Of a DNA stretch of 64,000 nucleotides, positions 11,095 to 63,885 are shown one piece after another. The stretch is from positions 1 to 64,000 of the IMG/VR virus record IMGVR_UViG_3300036770_007495. One strand, given 5' to 3'. Under the pieces are notes generated by a model. It was not told where the DNA came from, ran no database searches, and worked only from the letters and a program-made list of their open reading frames with translations. The translations under genes were made by a program, and so were the position numbers. Position 1 is the first letter of the stretch; every line of letters begins with the position of its first letter.

Positions 11095-11140
11095 AGACAA
11101 AATATTAAATCTGGCATTTATGCAGCATAATTCACCTAGC

Positions 11141-12238
11141 ATGACACTACCAACACTCTATTCTCGCACCAGCACAGGTGCCATTCAAAAATGGTTCATT
11201 GAAATCTGTGATGATGCATATCGCACCATTTATGGTCAAGTTGATGGCAAGTTGCAGTCAACAGAGTTCACCATTTGCAAGCCCAAGAACGAAGGCAAGG
11301 CAAATGCTACAACTGGTGCAGAGCAGGCTCTCAAAGAAGCCAAGGCTTTGTGGAAGAAAAAGAAAGACAGCGGATGTTTTGAAGACATCAACGACATTGA
11401 CAAAATGTTGTTTACAGAGCCCATGCTTGCCAAGAAGTATGAGGATTATGCAGATGAAATCGAATTTCCTGTCTATTCTCAGCCCAAGCTGGATGGCATT
11501 CGTTGCATTGCTCGCAAGGATGGTCTTTGGAGTCGCAATGGCAAGAAGTTTGTTAGTGTGCCTCACATTGAACAAGCACTCAAGCCAGTGTTTGAATTAC
11601 ATCCCAATCTAGTTTTGGATGGTGAATTGTATTGCGACAAGTTCAGCAATGACTTCAATGCCATTTGTTCTCTGGTCAAAAAGACCAAGCCAACGGAGCA
11701 AGATTTGAAAGACTCTGCAGCAAGCATTCAGTATTGGGTGTATGACTCTGATGTCAAAAACAAATTCCGTCTGCGGTTTTATGATGTTGTGCAAAGCACA
11801 ATTGACATGGTTGCAAGTGACTTTATTCGTGAAGTACCAACCGAGTTTGTGCAGAACAAACCTTATCTTGATTCATTATACGAGAAGTACATCAATGAAG
11901 GCTATGAGGGTCAGATGGTGCGCCTTGACAAGCCATATGAAAACAAACGCAGCAAAAGCCTGCTCAAGCGCAAAGAATTTCAGGACAAGGAATACACTAT
12001 CCTGGATGTCATTGAAGGTGAAGGCAACCGCTCTGGTGGCGCTGGTGCAATGACATTTGAGAACGAGCAAGGCACACGATTCAACAGCAACATCAAAGGC
12101 TCTCGTGAGTATTGTGCACAACTGCTGCGCGAAAAAGATCAGCTCATTGGCAAGCAGGCCACTGTCAAGTTTTTCAATCTGACACCTGACAATGTGCCCC
12201 GCTTCCCGTTTGTAACAGCAATCCGTGACTATGAGTGA
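11141..12238 (+). CDS. ATP-dependent DNA ligase
   Basis: EPMLAK, QPKLDGIRC, LDGELY, YEGQMVR, YENKRS..LLK.K, PRFP. Confidence 0.95.
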   Translation: MTLPTLYSRTSTGAIQKWFIEICDDAYRTIYGQVDGKLQSTEFTICKPKNEGKANATTGAEQALKEAKALWKKKKDSGCFEDINDIDKMLFTEPMLAKKYEDYADEIEFPVYSQPKLDGIRCIARKDGLWSRNGKKFVSVPHIEQALKPVFELHPNLVLDGELYCDKFSNDFNAICSLVKKTKPTEQDLKDSAASIQYWVYDSDVKNKFRLRFYDVVQSTIDMVASDFIREVPTEFVQNKPYLDSLYEKYINEGYEGQMVRLDKPYENKRSKSLLKRKEFQDKEYTILDVIEGEGNRSGGAGAMTFENEQGTRFNSNIKGSREYCAQLLREKDQLIGKQATVKFFNLTPDNVPRFPFVTAIRDYE

Positions 12239-12863: not shown

Positions 12864-12897
12864 TTGACTGTCTGCAGATTTGCATTATAATGAATGC
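12864..12897 (+). promoter_or_regulatory. Sigma70-like early promoter, leaderless
   Basis: TTGACT-N16-TATAAT-N6-ATG. Confidence 0.8.
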
Positions 12898-14082
12898 ATG
12901 AACAATTATCTTGCTCAACACTTTTGGAACTACGAAACCAATTGCATTGATGGTCTGAAGCTGTGGAGTGCTCTGCAGCCGCACATTGCAAAAGGTGAAC
13001 TCATTGTCAACGAAGGCAAAGGTGATCGCGAAGGCCTCAAGCTTGTAACCTATTCCAAGACCTATCAGTACGAACACAATTCTGTTGCATGGGATCCTCT
13101 TGTGCAGCATTGCCGCGGCATCATCTTTGATGCAACTGATGACTACAAGATCGTAGCTCTTCCCTTCTCCAAGTTCTTCAACTATGGTGAAGGCGGCATT
13201 CATTATCCTTCCGCTGGTGCTGAGATTGAACAGGTTTGGACCAAATATGACGGTTCACTGTTCATCATCTTTCATTGGAAAGATAAGTGGCATGGAACTA
13301 CCCGCGGATCACTCAATTCAGATATTGGACAGGTGGGTCAGCAGATTCTGGATAGCTATGTGCACAATGGATTGGTTATGCATCGAGATTACACTTATCT
13401 TGCAGAGTTGATTTACAAGGAAAATCAAATTGTTGTAAATTATGGTGATGATCGCAAGCTTGTGCTGCTTGGTGTGCGTAATCGTTATGCAGGCCATGTT
13501 TATATGCCTGATTGGATCATTGATCGCTTTCATGGTGGATTGACAATTAAGCCGTTTGAAGTTGCTCGTCGTTGGAAATTTGCAAACAAAGAAGAAATGC
13601 TTGCATGGCTCAACCAAACCAAAGGTACTGAGTTTGAAGGCTTTGTGGTGCACTTCTCTGATGAAACTGTTTTCAAGTTCAAGTCTGAAGACTACATGCG
13701 TCTGCATCGCATCATTGCTCAGTTCACGTTCAAGCGTGTGCTGGAAGCTGTGCAGCTGCATCAAGAAGAAGAAATTCGCAAGGCATTGCCAGAAGAGCTC
13801 ATCCCTGAATTCGATCGTTACAAGTGGATGATTGAAGACAAAGTGGACAGCATCATTGCATATGTTGACAAGATTGTGCACAATGCTCCAAAAAGCTCTC
13901 GCAAAGAGTTTGCACTTTATTTGCAACAGTATTACAAAGGTACAGATGCAATGAAGTATGCATTCAAGTACATTGACTTTGAAATGAACGTTGACAAGCT
14001 TGGCGAGCACATTTTGCAAAGCTTGCGCCGCGATGACTTTGAAGTTGCAGAGGACAAAAACAAAGATGATATTGATTCATGA
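12898..14082 (+). CDS. RNA ligase 1 (T4 RnlA-like)
   Basis: CRGIIF, PFSKFFN, KYDGS, TRGS, FEGFVV, KFKS.DY..LHR. Confidence 0.9.
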   Translation: MNNYLAQHFWNYETNCIDGLKLWSALQPHIAKGELIVNEGKGDREGLKLVTYSKTYQYEHNSVAWDPLVQHCRGIIFDATDDYKIVALPFSKFFNYGEGGIHYPSAGAEIEQVWTKYDGSLFIIFHWKDKWHGTTRGSLNSDIGQVGQQILDSYVHNGLVMHRDYTYLAELIYKENQIVVNYGDDRKLVLLGVRNRYAGHVYMPDWIIDRFHGGLTIKPFEVARRWKFANKEEMLAWLNQTKGTEFEGFVVHFSDETVFKFKSEDYMRLHRIIAQFTFKRVLEAVQLHQEEEIRKALPEELIPEFDRYKWMIEDKVDSIIAYVDKIVHNAPKSSRKEFALYLQQYYKGTDAMKYAFKYIDFEMNVDKLGEHILQSLRRDDFEVAEDKNKDDIDS

Positions 14083-15388: not shown

Positions 15389-16855
15389 ATGAACATCAAT
15401 CCTGCATCTCTCATTGACGGCTACAAAGTCGGCCACATTCATCAGTATCCCAAGAATACTGAAATCATCTTCAGCAATTTGACAGCACGTTCCACCCGCC
15501 GTCTCAACACTGACAAGGTGGTTTTCGCAGGCCTGCAGTACTTCGTCAAAGAGTACCTCATCAAGCAGTGGAATGAAAACTTCTTCCACAAGCCCATTGA
15601 AGAAGTCGTTCACAAGTTCAATCGTCGCATCAACAATTACATTGTACCTAACAATGTTGGTGATCAGCACATTCGCGACCTGCACGAGCTTGGCTATCTG
15701 CCAATTGTAATTCTTGCTCTGCCAGAAGGCACTGAACATCCCATCAAGGTGCCAAGCCTTGTCATCTGGAATACAGATGAGCGCTTTGGTTGGCTCACCA
15801 ATTATCTGGAGACCATTCTGTCCACCAGCATCTGGGGCCCTTGCACCAGCGCCACTACTGCTCACCAGTACAAAAAGTTGCTCATGAAGTATGCTGCAGA
15901 GACTGTTGGTGATACCAGCTTTGTTCAGTGGCAGGGTCATGACTTCAGCTTCCGTGGCATGTATGGTCTTGAAGCTGCTTGCATGAGTGGCGCTACTCAC
16001 CTCTTCAGCTTCACGGGCACTGACACTGTTCCTGCTATCGACTTCCTTGAACAGTACTACAATGCTGACAGCGAGAAGGAACTTGTTGGTGGCAGCGTTG
16101 CTGCAACTGAACACAGCGTCATGTGCGCTGGTGGTGCTGACAATGAGATTGGCACTTTCCGTCGTCTGATTCATGATGTGTATCCGACTGGCATTGTGTC
16201 CATTGTGAGTGACACTTGGGACTACTGGAACACCATCACCAACATTGCTCGCGAGCTCAAGGATGAAATCATGCATCGTGATGGCAAGGTTGTCTTCCGC
16301 CCCGATACTGGGGATCCAGTCAGGGTTGTCATTGGTGATGAAGATGCTGCAAAAGATTCACCTGAATATAAAGGCTCCATTGAATGTCTTTGGGAGGTCT
16401 TTGGCGGCAAGGTGAACGCCAAGGGCTACAAGGAGCTTGATCCGCATGTGGGTCTCATCTATGGTGACAGCATCACGCTGGAACGTGCTCAGCAGATCTG
16501 TGAAGGTCTCAAGCGCAAGGGCTTTGCCAGCACCAACATTGTGTTTGGCGTTGGTAGCTACACTTACCAGTATGTGACTCGTGACACTGATGGCTATGCA
16601 GTCAAGGCAACCTATGCCAAGATTGATGGTCAGGATAAGGAAATCTTCAAGTCTCCCAAGGGTGCTGCATTCAAGAAGAGTGCCAAGGGTCTGACTGCTG
16701 TCTTCAAGGATGCTGATGGTGAGTTCTACCTCAAGGATCAGGCCACTTGGGATGAAGTTCACAACTGCGAATTCGTTGAAGTGTTTGCTGATGGTCATGT
16801 CGTCAAGGATTATACTCTGCAGGAAGTTCGCAACAACCTGGCTCAATACGTCTAA
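15389..16855 (+). CDS. Nicotinamide phosphoribosyltransferase-like protein (Namat-like)
   Basis: DGYK.GH..QYP, HDFSFRG, ATEHSVM, VSDTWD, RPDTGDP, IYGDSIT, KKSAKG. Confidence 0.93.
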   Translation: MNINPASLIDGYKVGHIHQYPKNTEIIFSNLTARSTRRLNTDKVVFAGLQYFVKEYLIKQWNENFFHKPIEEVVHKFNRRINNYIVPNNVGDQHIRDLHELGYLPIVILALPEGTEHPIKVPSLVIWNTDERFGWLTNYLETILSTSIWGPCTSATTAHQYKKLLMKYAAETVGDTSFVQWQGHDFSFRGMYGLEAACMSGATHLFSFTGTDTVPAIDFLEQYYNADSEKELVGGSVAATEHSVMCAGGADNEIGTFRRLIHDVYPTGIVSIVSDTWDYWNTITNIARELKDEIMHRDGKVVFRPDTGDPVRVVIGDEDAAKDSPEYKGSIECLWEVFGGKVNAKGYKELDPHVGLIYGDSITLERAQQICEGLKRKGFASTNIVFGVGSYTYQYVTRDTDGYAVKATYAKIDGQDKEIFKSPKGAAFKKSAKGLTAVFKDADGEFYLKDQATWDEVHNCEFVEVFADGHVVKDYTLQEVRNNLAQYV

Positions 16856-29011: not shown

Positions 29012-29418
29012 GCGCGGTTAGCTCAATGGTCAGAGCAGGGAACTCGATAGGGTCGGTGCATTGGAAACGATGCATTTGTAAGGTGTAAATTCGGTGAACG
29101 GTTTAATCTCCCAACGCCGAGCGAAGCGGGCACTGTAAAGGAATGAGAATCGTCGGGTAAGCCAAACTCGAAAGAGTGGAACCCCTGACAGCCCGAACGT
29201 GTAGAGACTATAATCACCTGCCTAAGTTTTGCGGATAAGTCTCACCTAACTGTGAACGTAAAATAAGGCAAAGGCATAGTCCAGACCACAAACAGAGTGA
29301 GAGACGTTGAAACGGAACGGTGCGTATTCTCATAAGTTATTCCGTAACTCTGGTAGTGAAAACTATAGTGGTAAGCATAATTCCTTGGTTGGGGGTTCGA
29401 ATCCCTCACTGCGCACCA
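29012..29418 (+). tRNA. tRNA(CAT) (elongator Met or Ile2) interrupted by a group I intron
   Basis: Exon 1 29012-29044 ends GGGAACT; exon 2 29376-29418 CATAATTCCT...TTCGAAT...ACCA; G1-C72 paired so not initiator. Confidence 0.88.
29045..29375 (+). mobile_element. ORF-less group I intron (331 nt)
   Basis: Exon ends in U, intron ends in G; P1 ACT|C-GATA-GGGT with U.G pair; P AATTCGGTGAA, Q AACGCCGAGC, R GTAGAGACTA, S AAGGCATAGTCC. Confidence 0.88.
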
Positions 29419-29569: not shown

Positions 29570-29662
29570 GGGAGGATAGTTTAACATGCGAAAAACCAGA
29601 GTTGTATTGGCAACCGCCTTGAGTGGCATCTGATGCAGGTTCAAGGTCTGCTCCTCCTTCCA
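29570..29662 (+). ncRNA. tRNA-like RNA with branched anticodon arm and encoded CCA
   Basis: GGGAGGA/TCCTCCT-T-CCA; D-arm GTTT/AAAC; CAGA/TCTG enclosing two hairpins; T-arm GCAGG-TTCAAGG-TCTGC. Confidence 0.65.
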
Positions 29663-42891: not shown

Positions 42892-43000
42892 TGAGTGCAT
42901 GGTGAAATGGTAAACACAGCCGTTGGCGAGGAGGTCGCCATTACGCGGGGCCGCTGATTTAATCACAGCTTGTGGGTTCAAATCCTGCTGCACTCAATCA
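42892..43000 (+). ncRNA. tRNA-Leu-like RNA with extended anticodon arm
   Basis: GAGTGCA/TGCACTC; GTGAAATGGTAAACAC D-arm; long variable arm; GTGGG-TTCAAAT-CCTGC; TGGCGA-GGAGG-TCGCCA apex. Confidence 0.6.
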
Positions 43001-58612: not shown

Positions 58613-59056
58613 GGGGGCGAACTGGCTTCGACTCAATTGGTTGATTCAGATTCGCATGCAGAGGTAGACTAGCTGGCCTCTATAAAAGCAAGTCAAAAAA
58701 CATAAACGCAGAAGACACTGAAGTCGATGCCCTCTTGGCGCAAGCTGAGTACATCTTCAACAATGCTGACGAATTCCTCGTCAACGAAGTTGAAATGGCA
58801 CTCGCTGCCTAAGCAAAAACAATGTTGGATCCTATTAAAAACATTGAGGCAAGCAATAGGTGGAGCTGAACAATGTATGCTCTTAAATCAAACATTGGGG
58901 TGATGTCAGACTCTTCACTGACATAGGTAGGCTCTAAAACTCAGGTTGATGCGCCATGCAAACCTTTTGCCAATGAAATTGCAAATGCATCCAAGCATGT
59001 AGACGGTTTGATGATGTTGATTGAACACAGGGGTTCGACTCCCCTCGCCTCCACCA
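58613..59056 (+). ncRNA. ssrA: tmRNA
   Basis: GGGGGCGAACTGGCTTCGAC 5' end; GGTTCGACTCCCCTCGCCTCCACCA 3' end; G3.U70; tag ORF 58708-58812 ending ALAA*. Confidence 0.95.
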
Positions 59057-61585: not shown

Positions 61586-61983
61586 AAAAGCAAAAAAAAG
61601 TTGTTGAATAACAGTTGAGTGTACATAAATAGACTGTACATTCAAAAAACATGAACGTTGATCTCACATGCAGCAAACCAATTAGCGAGGGGCACCAAGT
61701 GTCCGCGCTCGGTTGCATGTGGCCTGATTATCCGTCCTTGCAACGAAATCGATTTTCAAGATAATTGAAAAAAGAAGTTGAAGGAACAGAGATAGAGGGT
61801 ATTGTAGATACATAACAACAACGGTTCATGACGAGGGATGACCACAACAGCCCAAGAGTTCGCAGAATGCGACGTTCAGCCAAAAGCTGCCAGTGTAGTA
61901 AAGTATTGAAATGAAGCAAAGTGGGTTAGTAGTGCACAAGCACGAGGCTTCCCGGGTAGCCCCAAAAGCCACGATTTTCAAAA

Positions 61984-62058
61984 GGCTGCTTAGCTGAGAT
62001 AGATTAGCGTCTGCCTGAAGAGCAGAAAAGACTGGAGCGTTACCAGTAGCAGCCACCA
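61984..62058 (+). tRNA. tRNA-Phe(GAA), non-canonical T-loop
   Basis: Full cloverleaf, CT-GAA-GA, T-loop AGCGTTA, CCA. Confidence 0.85.
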
Positions 62059-62062
62059 TTTC

Positions 62063-62151
62063 GGGACCTGCCCCCATCAGCGGACTGTAAATCCGTTGCC
62101 ATTAATAAGATGGGAAGTTGGCAAGTGGTGCGTTACCACCAGGGCCCACCA
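62063..62151 (+). tRNA. tRNA-Tyr(GTA) lacking a D-arm
   Basis: GCGGA-CT-GTA-AA-TCCGT; long variable arm; T-loop TGCGTTA; ACCA. Confidence 0.75.
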
Positions 62152-62306
62152 TTTCAAGTTGGAGATGACGCGCTGTGTTGTCTTTAAAACGCTAACCAAC
62201 AAGAACAAACTAGTAATGCCGCTAGTATATACAAAGGCAGTCCTCATCACCTTATGGTGCTGATATGGCTTCTTTTTCCGTGAGCCCGTTAATCACGGAA
62301 TATTTT

Positions 62307-62397
62307 GGAGAGAGCCCGGCTAGACGAGGAGCAATCTTGGAAAGATTGTAACACTTCGAAAGAGGTGTTAAGGGTGCGAGTCCCTTTCTCTCCTCCA
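62307..62397 (+). tRNA. tRNA-Ser(GGA)
   Basis: CAATC-TT-GGA-AA-GATTG; long variable arm; T-loop TGCGAGT; CCA. Confidence 0.8.
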
Positions 62398-62403
62398 TTT
62401 TAT

Positions 62404-62493
62404 GGGCAGTTAACTAGACAAGCGCGCTGGGACCGACTTGAAATCGGATCGAGGTCGAAAGGCCTTGGGGTGCAAGCCCTCAGCTGCCCGCCA
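62404..62493 (+). tRNA. tRNA-Ser(TGA)
   Basis: CCGA-CT-TGA-AA-TCGG; long variable arm; T-loop TGCAAGC; GCCA. Confidence 0.82.
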
Positions 62494-63808: not shown

Positions 63809-63885
63809 CGGGTGGTGTCTGGACAAGTAAACGAACTCGGTTTGGAGTCGAGTAAATGTGGGAGCGTTACCCACTCACCCGACCA
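63809..63885 (+). tRNA. Second, divergent tRNA-Pro(TGG)
   Basis: CGGGTGG/TCACCCG-ACCA; TT-TGG-AG loop (A37); T-loop AGCGTTA. Confidence 0.75.

Follow-up and report, generated by a model that had tools for sequence, protein, structure and literature searches.

Does a phage locus in which only 9 nt separate the acceptor and anticodon stems, with no D hairpin, encode a tyrosine tRNA in use, and by what pairing is the missing D-arm replaced? The locus is at 62063-62151 (+) of IMG/VR virus record IMGVR_UViG_3300036770_007495. The window analysed is the first 64,000 nt of this record. Sequence-only reading of the locus had proposed a D-armless tRNA-Tyr in which the variable loop supplies the 3' strand of the D-stem and the elbow contacts, giving a pseudoknot. 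All elements of that description are present at exactly these positions, and the proposed pairing is supported by comparative data. One correction: the flanking variable stem, given there as 4 bp, can be 5 bp (TGCCA/TGGCA).

Tyrosine tRNA gene, 89 nt in length. Located after a tRNA-Phe gene, with a 4-nt spacer. Like its neighbours, ends in CCA followed by TTT. The segment between the acceptor and anticodon stems, C9-A17, is CCCCCATCA. The elements, with their conservation in the relatives described below, are as follows.

62063-62070 (+), acceptor stem 5' strand, 8 nt (GGGACCTG), pairing with 62140-62147, with an A4.G mismatch; 98.0% paired over 68 sequences, all 8 pairs showing changes on both sides.
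62071-62072 (+), two-nt linker CC from the acceptor stem to the elbow-side end of helix H1; CC in 58 of 66 family members.
62073-62078 (+), 5' strand of H1, CCCATC (nt 11-16), the D-stem equivalent, continuing directly through A17 into the anticodon stem.
62079 (+), single spacer nucleotide A17, position-26-like; G in 42, A in 23 and C in 1 of the family.
62080-62096 (+), anticodon arm, stem GCGGA/TCCGT, loop CTGTAAA, anticodon GTA (Tyr) at 62087-62089; stem 99.4% paired.
62097-62101 (+), 5' strand of helix H2, TGCCA (nt 35-39), the variable-arm stem.
62102-62108 (+), loop L2, TTAATAA, an A-rich connector from the H2 tip to the anticodon-side end of H1; 4-10 nt and 51% A across the family.
62109-62114 (+), 3' strand of H1, GATGGG (nt 47-52), the exact complement of CCCATC, crossing H2.
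62115-62118 (+), AAGT, the D-loop equivalent; AG is proposed to meet G55 and C56 of the T loop.
62119-62123 (+), 3' strand of H2, TGGCA (nt 57-61).
62124 (+), one-nt connector A to the T stem, position-48-like.
62125-62139 (+), T arm, 4-bp stem GTGG/CCAC with the non-canonical loop TGCGTTA (G55, C56); stem 100% paired, loop AGCGTTA in 57 and TGCGTTA in 9 members.
62140-62147 (+), acceptor stem 3' strand (CAGGGCCC).
62148-62151 (+), discriminator A73 and encoded CCA end; A73 in 66/66 members.

Not detected by ARAGORN. Not matched by the Rfam tRNA model RF00005 (gathering threshold 29 bits) even at E<=10, although the neighbouring tRNA-Phe scores 44.6 bits. Folding by energy alone is uninformative: the minimum-free-energy structure (-29.0 kcal/mol, z = -0.63) is nested, and H1 is not favoured by nearest-neighbour energies (core alone -21.5 kcal/mol, core plus H1 -17.9 kcal/mol). 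The 6-nt complement in this one sequence is only moderately unlikely, occurring in about 1% of shuffles of the 28-nt variable region. The single sequence could not settle the matter.

Relatives were collected by pattern scans. A pattern fixing only the top of the anticodon arm and part of the T loop returned 90 viral contigs, of two classes: a normal cloverleaf tRNA-Tyr with the same G55 T loop and a D loop TAAAGAC, and a long class with exactly the architecture of the window. A second pattern and a scan of bacterial and archaeal genomes raised the long class to 66 distinct sequences on 123 metagenomic contigs. The anticodon loop CTGTAAA, A73, CCA and the 8/4 division of the acceptor/T branch are found in every member. 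Pair 1-72 is GC in 62 and AU in 4. The anticodon loop was fixed in the first scan, but a later scan in which it was not fixed returned no true member with another anticodon, three unrelated matches aside. The patterns fixed the T loop and, in some scans, the AAGT motif, so that the diversity and the counts are lower bounds. No match to the tRNA was found by blastn in 50,697 GenBank phage records; it is known only from uncultured sequences.

H1 is paired throughout the family. In a gapless alignment of 19 89-mers, used because a MAFFT alignment misaligned one subgroup in the variable region, H1 is 100% paired and three pairs change on both sides. With the 3' strand anchored on the invariant AAGT rather than on pairing, 366 of 366 cells in 61 distinct sequences are paired, with 22 strand combinations, against 24-50% when the register is slid and 279 cells in the best of 1,000 partner shuffles. 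In a 68-sequence alignment made with a covariance model that contained only the acceptor, anticodon and T pairs, H1 is 99.0% paired, with compensatory changes at 5 of 6 pairs. This is as good as the acceptor and anticodon stems. An ordinary class-II tRNA-Tyr with a decayed D-arm, in which the match arose by chance, is refuted by this covariation, although one relative (L050) is truncated at its 3' end; purifying selection acts on all helices. The nested energy fold, in which G8-C10 would pair with GGC of the variable region to give one long irregular helix without a pseudoknot, is likewise excluded by the family comparison: nt 8-10 stay GCC in nearly all members, while the supposed partner changes to GCC, GAG, AGG, GAC and others without compensation, whereas nt 35-39 do compensate.

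H2 is shorter, 3-5 bp, and its register differs between subgroups. Its three core pairs (36-38 core) are 100% paired in the gapless alignment, and the middle pair, 37-59, is GC in 12, UA in 4 and CG in 3. At least three consecutive Watson-Crick pairs between the first six nt after the anticodon stem and the segment after AAGT are present in 66/66 members, with a mean of 3.64 against 2.1-2.3 in two controls, and about ten different complementary cores occur. The strands follow in the order H1 5', H2 5', H1 3', H2 3'; the helices therefore cross, and the comparative data indicate a pseudoknot. A D-armless tRNA with only an extended anticodon helix, as in animal mitochondrial tRNA-Ser(AGY), with H2 as an alternative or precursor-state pairing, is unlikely but not excluded: H2 is only 68.9% paired in the structure-blind alignment, and the 4-6 nt between H1 and H2 may strain the fold. 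Against this, H2 also covaries in the tRNA-Arg families described below (GAC/GTC, AGC/GCT, GGC/GCC, ACG/CGT), and conservation of both helices in three isoacceptor families is most simply explained by coexistence. The tRNA is not truly D-armless, because a D-stem equivalent exists but is topologically inverted.

The nucleotides just after the 3' strand of H1 follow the type of the T loop. In 1,122 distinct ordinary cloverleaf tRNAs from the same loci, U55 goes with GG in the D loop (1,019 of 1,020), and G55 goes with AG and no GG (71 of 74). The permuted tRNAs obey the same rule, with AG in 63 of 63 with G55 and GG in 42 of 42 with U55. The rule holds inside the Tyr family, where five members with canonical T loops carry GG. 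One of these, L403, is a close relative of a G55 subgroup and has TGGT plus TTCGATT in place of AAGT plus AGCGTTA. This covariation is consistent with an elbow contact equivalent to D-loop 18/19 with T-loop 55/56, and is the strongest support for elbow contacts being supplied by the variable loop.

The architecture is not restricted to Tyr. Two tRNA-Arg(UCU) genes with the same layout were picked up by the covariance model, and targeted scans gave about 40 distinct tRNA-Arg(UCU) genes and one tRNA-Arg(ACG). A 14-base pattern for the Arg type returned mostly chance matches, 6 true members remaining after filtering; a better pattern followed. These genes have an 8-bp acceptor stem, a two-nt linker, an H1 of 5 or 6 bp, one spacer, the anticodon arm, the H2 5' strand, an A-rich loop, the H1 3' strand, NNGGA, the H2 3' strand and a 4-bp T stem. 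H1 is perfect in 34 of 37 in the anchored register, the other three pairing with a one-nt offset, and 16 strand combinations occur. In a gapless 10-sequence alignment H1 is 100% paired, with 3 of 5 compensatory pairs. No such arrangement was found by a structural scanner in shuffled loci. Arg is not a class-II tRNA, so the fold is not merely a modified long variable arm.

The record is 224,703 bp in length, with direct terminal repeats. A tRNA cluster of about 34 genes runs from about 61.98 to 71.7 kb, with a few more tRNA genes elsewhere in the genome. Together these tRNAs cover 19 amino acids; the only gene with a Tyr anticodon is the one under study. No second copy was found in a model search of this phage. 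No TyrRS gene was found. An Rnl1-like RNA ligase, a NAMPT and a DNA ligase are encoded. The only matches to cultured phages are below 30% identity (DNA polymerase). In 124 loci carrying the permuted tRNA-Tyr (1.11 Mb, 1,852 ARAGORN tRNAs), every other amino acid is represented 56-159 times and Tyr only 7 times: the odd form replaces the normal one. Four Verrucomicrobiales MAG contigs and one Crocinitomicaceae MAG contig carry it, always inside tRNA arrays. One of these arrays lies about 85 kb from the end of a 1.28-Mb contig, flanked by ordinary PVC chromosomal genes and a DDE transposase; six canonical tRNA-Tyr genes are present elsewhere in that genome. The permuted tRNA is therefore a trait of arrays and phages, not of the core set of the host. 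Contigs assembled from four freshwater RNA libraries cover the gene in relatives, for example a 140-nt contig over 62075-62214 at word depth 226, although DNA carry-over cannot be excluded.

A tRNA-like RNA not used in translation (a decoy or inhibitor for a tRNA-targeting nuclease or modification enzyme, or a regulatory RNA that only mimics tRNA-Tyr) is improbable. Standard tRNA models reject the gene, phage tRNA arrays may act against tRNA-directed defence, and some irregular tRNAs are charged but not used in translation (Mukai et al. 2017, PMC5389517). However, the 7-nt anticodon loop with U33, a purine at 37 and GUA is invariant, A73, CCA and a 12-bp acceptor/T branch are present, and the gene takes the place of the normal tRNA-Tyr in arrays that otherwise cover all amino acids; a decoy would not need to displace the real tRNA. 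The sequence features likely to confer bacterial-type tRNA-Tyr identity are present (G1-C72, A73, G34 U35, an extra arm; PMC9976931).

On comparative evidence alone, without probing or charging data, the locus probably encodes the tyrosine tRNA (anticodon GUA) of the phage, functional and with a topologically inverted D-stem; this explanation is held with good confidence. The 5' strand of H1 runs straight into the anticodon stem, and H1 is inferred to stack on that stem, its 6 bp standing in for the 4-bp D-stem plus the 8-14 and 15-48 layers. The chain is inferred to enter H1 from the elbow side through the two-nt linker, the 8/4 split placing the exit of the acceptor strand one pair closer to the elbow. 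The variable-region strand probably stands where the canonical 5' D-strand (10-13) stands, since the D-loop-like nucleotides follow it, and is followed by a minimal D loop (AAGT here, NNGGA in the U55 forms), the AG of which would take the place of G18 G19 and dock on G55 and C56. H2 would be the stub of the variable arm, bridging the top of the anticodon stem to the start of the T stem. The A-rich L2 may line a groove of H1. Compared with a cloverleaf, the block made of the 5' D-strand and the D loop would have moved from before the anticodon arm to after it. Release from the array by RNase P, charging by a host bacterial-type TyrRS and use in translation in place of a normal tRNA-Tyr are inferred.

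No description of this fold was found in the searchable literature. Shares with bacterial class-II tRNA-Tyr the GUA anticodon in a CUGUAAA loop, G1-C72, A73, encoded CCA, an extra arm between the anticodon and T arms, a 12-bp branch and the tRNA-Tyr slot of the array; differs in the absence of a D hairpin, the D-stem equivalent formed with the loop of the variable arm, the 8/4 rather than 7/5 split, G55 and non-detection by ARAGORN and the Rfam model. Shares with the 8/4 and 9/3 allo-tRNAs and the phage (8/4) tRNA-Ser and tRNA-His (PMC5389517) the 8/4 split, a long extra arm and occurrence in phage tRNA clusters and metagenomes; as described in the text of that paper, allo-tRNAs keep a D hairpin (a long stem with a tetraloop) and carry serine identity or diverse anticodons, and no Tyr member or pseudoknot is mentioned there. 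Resembles D-arm-lacking mitochondrial tRNAs (mammalian mt tRNA-Ser(AGY), nematode and mite tRNAs) in the short connector and, apparently, in extra pairs stacked on the anticodon stem; those are truncated (about 55-65 nt), mitochondrial and without the D-loop/T-loop contact, whereas this tRNA is 89 nt, from a phage, and keeps an elbow dinucleotide that covaries with the T loop. No pseudoknotted or permuted-core tRNA is included in a 2020 review of non-canonical tRNAs (PMC7609411). Resembles tRNA-Sec in the extended acceptor stem (apparently 8 bp in bacteria), 6-bp D-stem and long extra arm; tRNA-Sec appears to have a local D hairpin with a 4-nt loop, a 13-bp branch (8/5 or 9/4), anticodon UCA and G73. 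In the tRNA-like structures of plant viral RNAs (e.g. TYMV), which appear to be L-shaped tRNA mimics built with a pseudoknot and able to engage tRNA enzymes, the pseudoknot probably forms the acceptor stem of a genomic RNA end that does not decode; here it forms the D-stem of a free-standing gene with an anticodon loop inside a tRNA array. In circularly permuted and split tRNA genes (Cyanidioschyzon, Nanoarchaeum; PMC4033280) the order of segments also differs from the canonical one, but processing appears to restore a normal cloverleaf; here the mature chain itself would keep the rearranged order.

It is possible, though only tentatively proposed, that this is a third general architecture for working elongator tRNAs, beside the cloverleaf and the truncated mitochondrial forms, which has arisen or spread across Tyr, Arg(UCU) and Arg(ACG) tRNAs. 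It would be maintained in phage genomes and bacterial tRNA-array islands because it is still accepted by synthetases, EF-Tu and the ribosome but no longer recognised by a host nuclease or modification enzyme that reads the D-arm or elbow; if so, it is a natural orthogonal tRNA scaffold and an immune-evasion device. Escape from such a host factor acting on tRNA-Tyr and tRNA-Arg is the preferred guess as to why the design is kept.

Outside mitochondria, tRNAs are taken to be cloverleaves, and gene finders are built on that assumption. Here a tRNA with every sequence sign of being in use has its D-stem strands in a different order, by comparative evidence held by a pseudoknot, and selection has kept this in more than 100 distinct genes for three anticodons. 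Phage and tRNA-array repertoires appear to lack Tyr and some Arg tRNAs when they do not. The fold shows which features of the L shape are really required, those kept being the 12-bp branch, the helix length on the anticodon side and, as far as sequence covariation indicates, the 18/19-55/56 elbow pair. As a candidate orthogonal scaffold it could be useful for genetic-code engineering. If the design is an escape from tRNA-directed defence, it points to host factors that read the D-arm.

About half of the tRNAs of this phage possess non-canonical T loops with G55 (NGCNNNN, for example AGCGTTA, TGCAAGT, GGCAGCA) and D loops carrying AG instead of GG. They are encoded at the following positions of the window and of the complete phage genome (G000):
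window 61984-62058, 62307-62397, 62404-62493 and 63809-63885, tRNAs with G55 T loops
G000 64399-69882, tRNAs with G55 T loops

Over 1,122 tRNAs of related loci the coupling is nearly absolute: GG with U55 in 1,019/1,020 and AG with G55 in 71/74. Several of these tRNAs are missed by ARAGORN or Rfam. The A4.G mismatch in the acceptor stem of the tRNA-Tyr (window 62066 with 62144) is shared by all seven members of the window's subgroup (GGGACCTG/CAGGGCCC) and is therefore conserved rather than a sequencing error.

The inverted-D-stem pseudoknot layout and the 8/4 branch are also found in tRNA-Arg(UCU), in about 40 distinct sequences, and in one tRNA-Arg(ACG). Most have canonical T loops and NNGGA after the H1 3' strand. 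Members occur in the following loci (L, sequence loci fetched for comparison):
L160:2254-2341
L158:4885-4971, minus strand
L205:11230-11318 and 11586-11673
L288-L338

The phage's own tRNA-Arg(TCT) (G000 68857-68939; L282:4857-4939) also lacks a normal D arm. Only 7 nt (TAGCGGA) lie before the anticodon stem; the 24-nt variable region contains CCGT followed by AATTGGA. Possibly a divergent 7/5 member of the same class. Scored by Rfam at only 33 bits. The tRNA-His (G000 68951-69027) has no G-1 and has A73. This type is associated with alphaproteobacteria and their phages (PMC5389517), a possible hint to the host.

A tRNA array carrying both the permuted tRNA-Tyr and the permuted tRNA-Arg (L160 with L339:18687-19814; contig C14 of genome G001, about 1,190,700-1,200,000) is located inside a 1.28-Mb Verrucomicrobiales contig, next to a Rhodopirellula-type DDE transposase and among ordinary chromosomal genes. 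Six canonical tRNA-Tyr genes are present elsewhere in the same genome.

Non-coding stretches without a tRNA call and further RNA elements are present in the window:
61640-61983 and 62152-62306, non-coding stretches inside the tRNA cluster
58613-59056, tmRNA
42893-42996, tRNA match with a long insertion
29322-29418 and 29570-29662, elements with unrecognisable middle regions

Two of the non-coding stretches end in CGATTTTCAA. RNA-library contigs of relatives cover 61722-61904 at word depths as high as over the tRNAs, and the stretches may hold further unrecognised structured RNAs. The tmRNA is 444 nt in length (Rfam 98.3 bits), with large insertions relative to the model; the tag peptide predicted by ARAGORN is unusual. 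The tRNA match with the long insertion is 104 nt in length (Rfam 37.2 bits). The two further elements, 93–97 nt in length, have a T arm, a paired acceptor and CCA.

An Rnl1-like RNA ligase (T4 tRNA-repair type), a nicotinamide phosphoribosyltransferase and an ATP-dependent DNA ligase are encoded in the window (12880-14082, 15389-16855, 11120-12238). The RNA ligase fits a phage that faces tRNA-cleaving defence.
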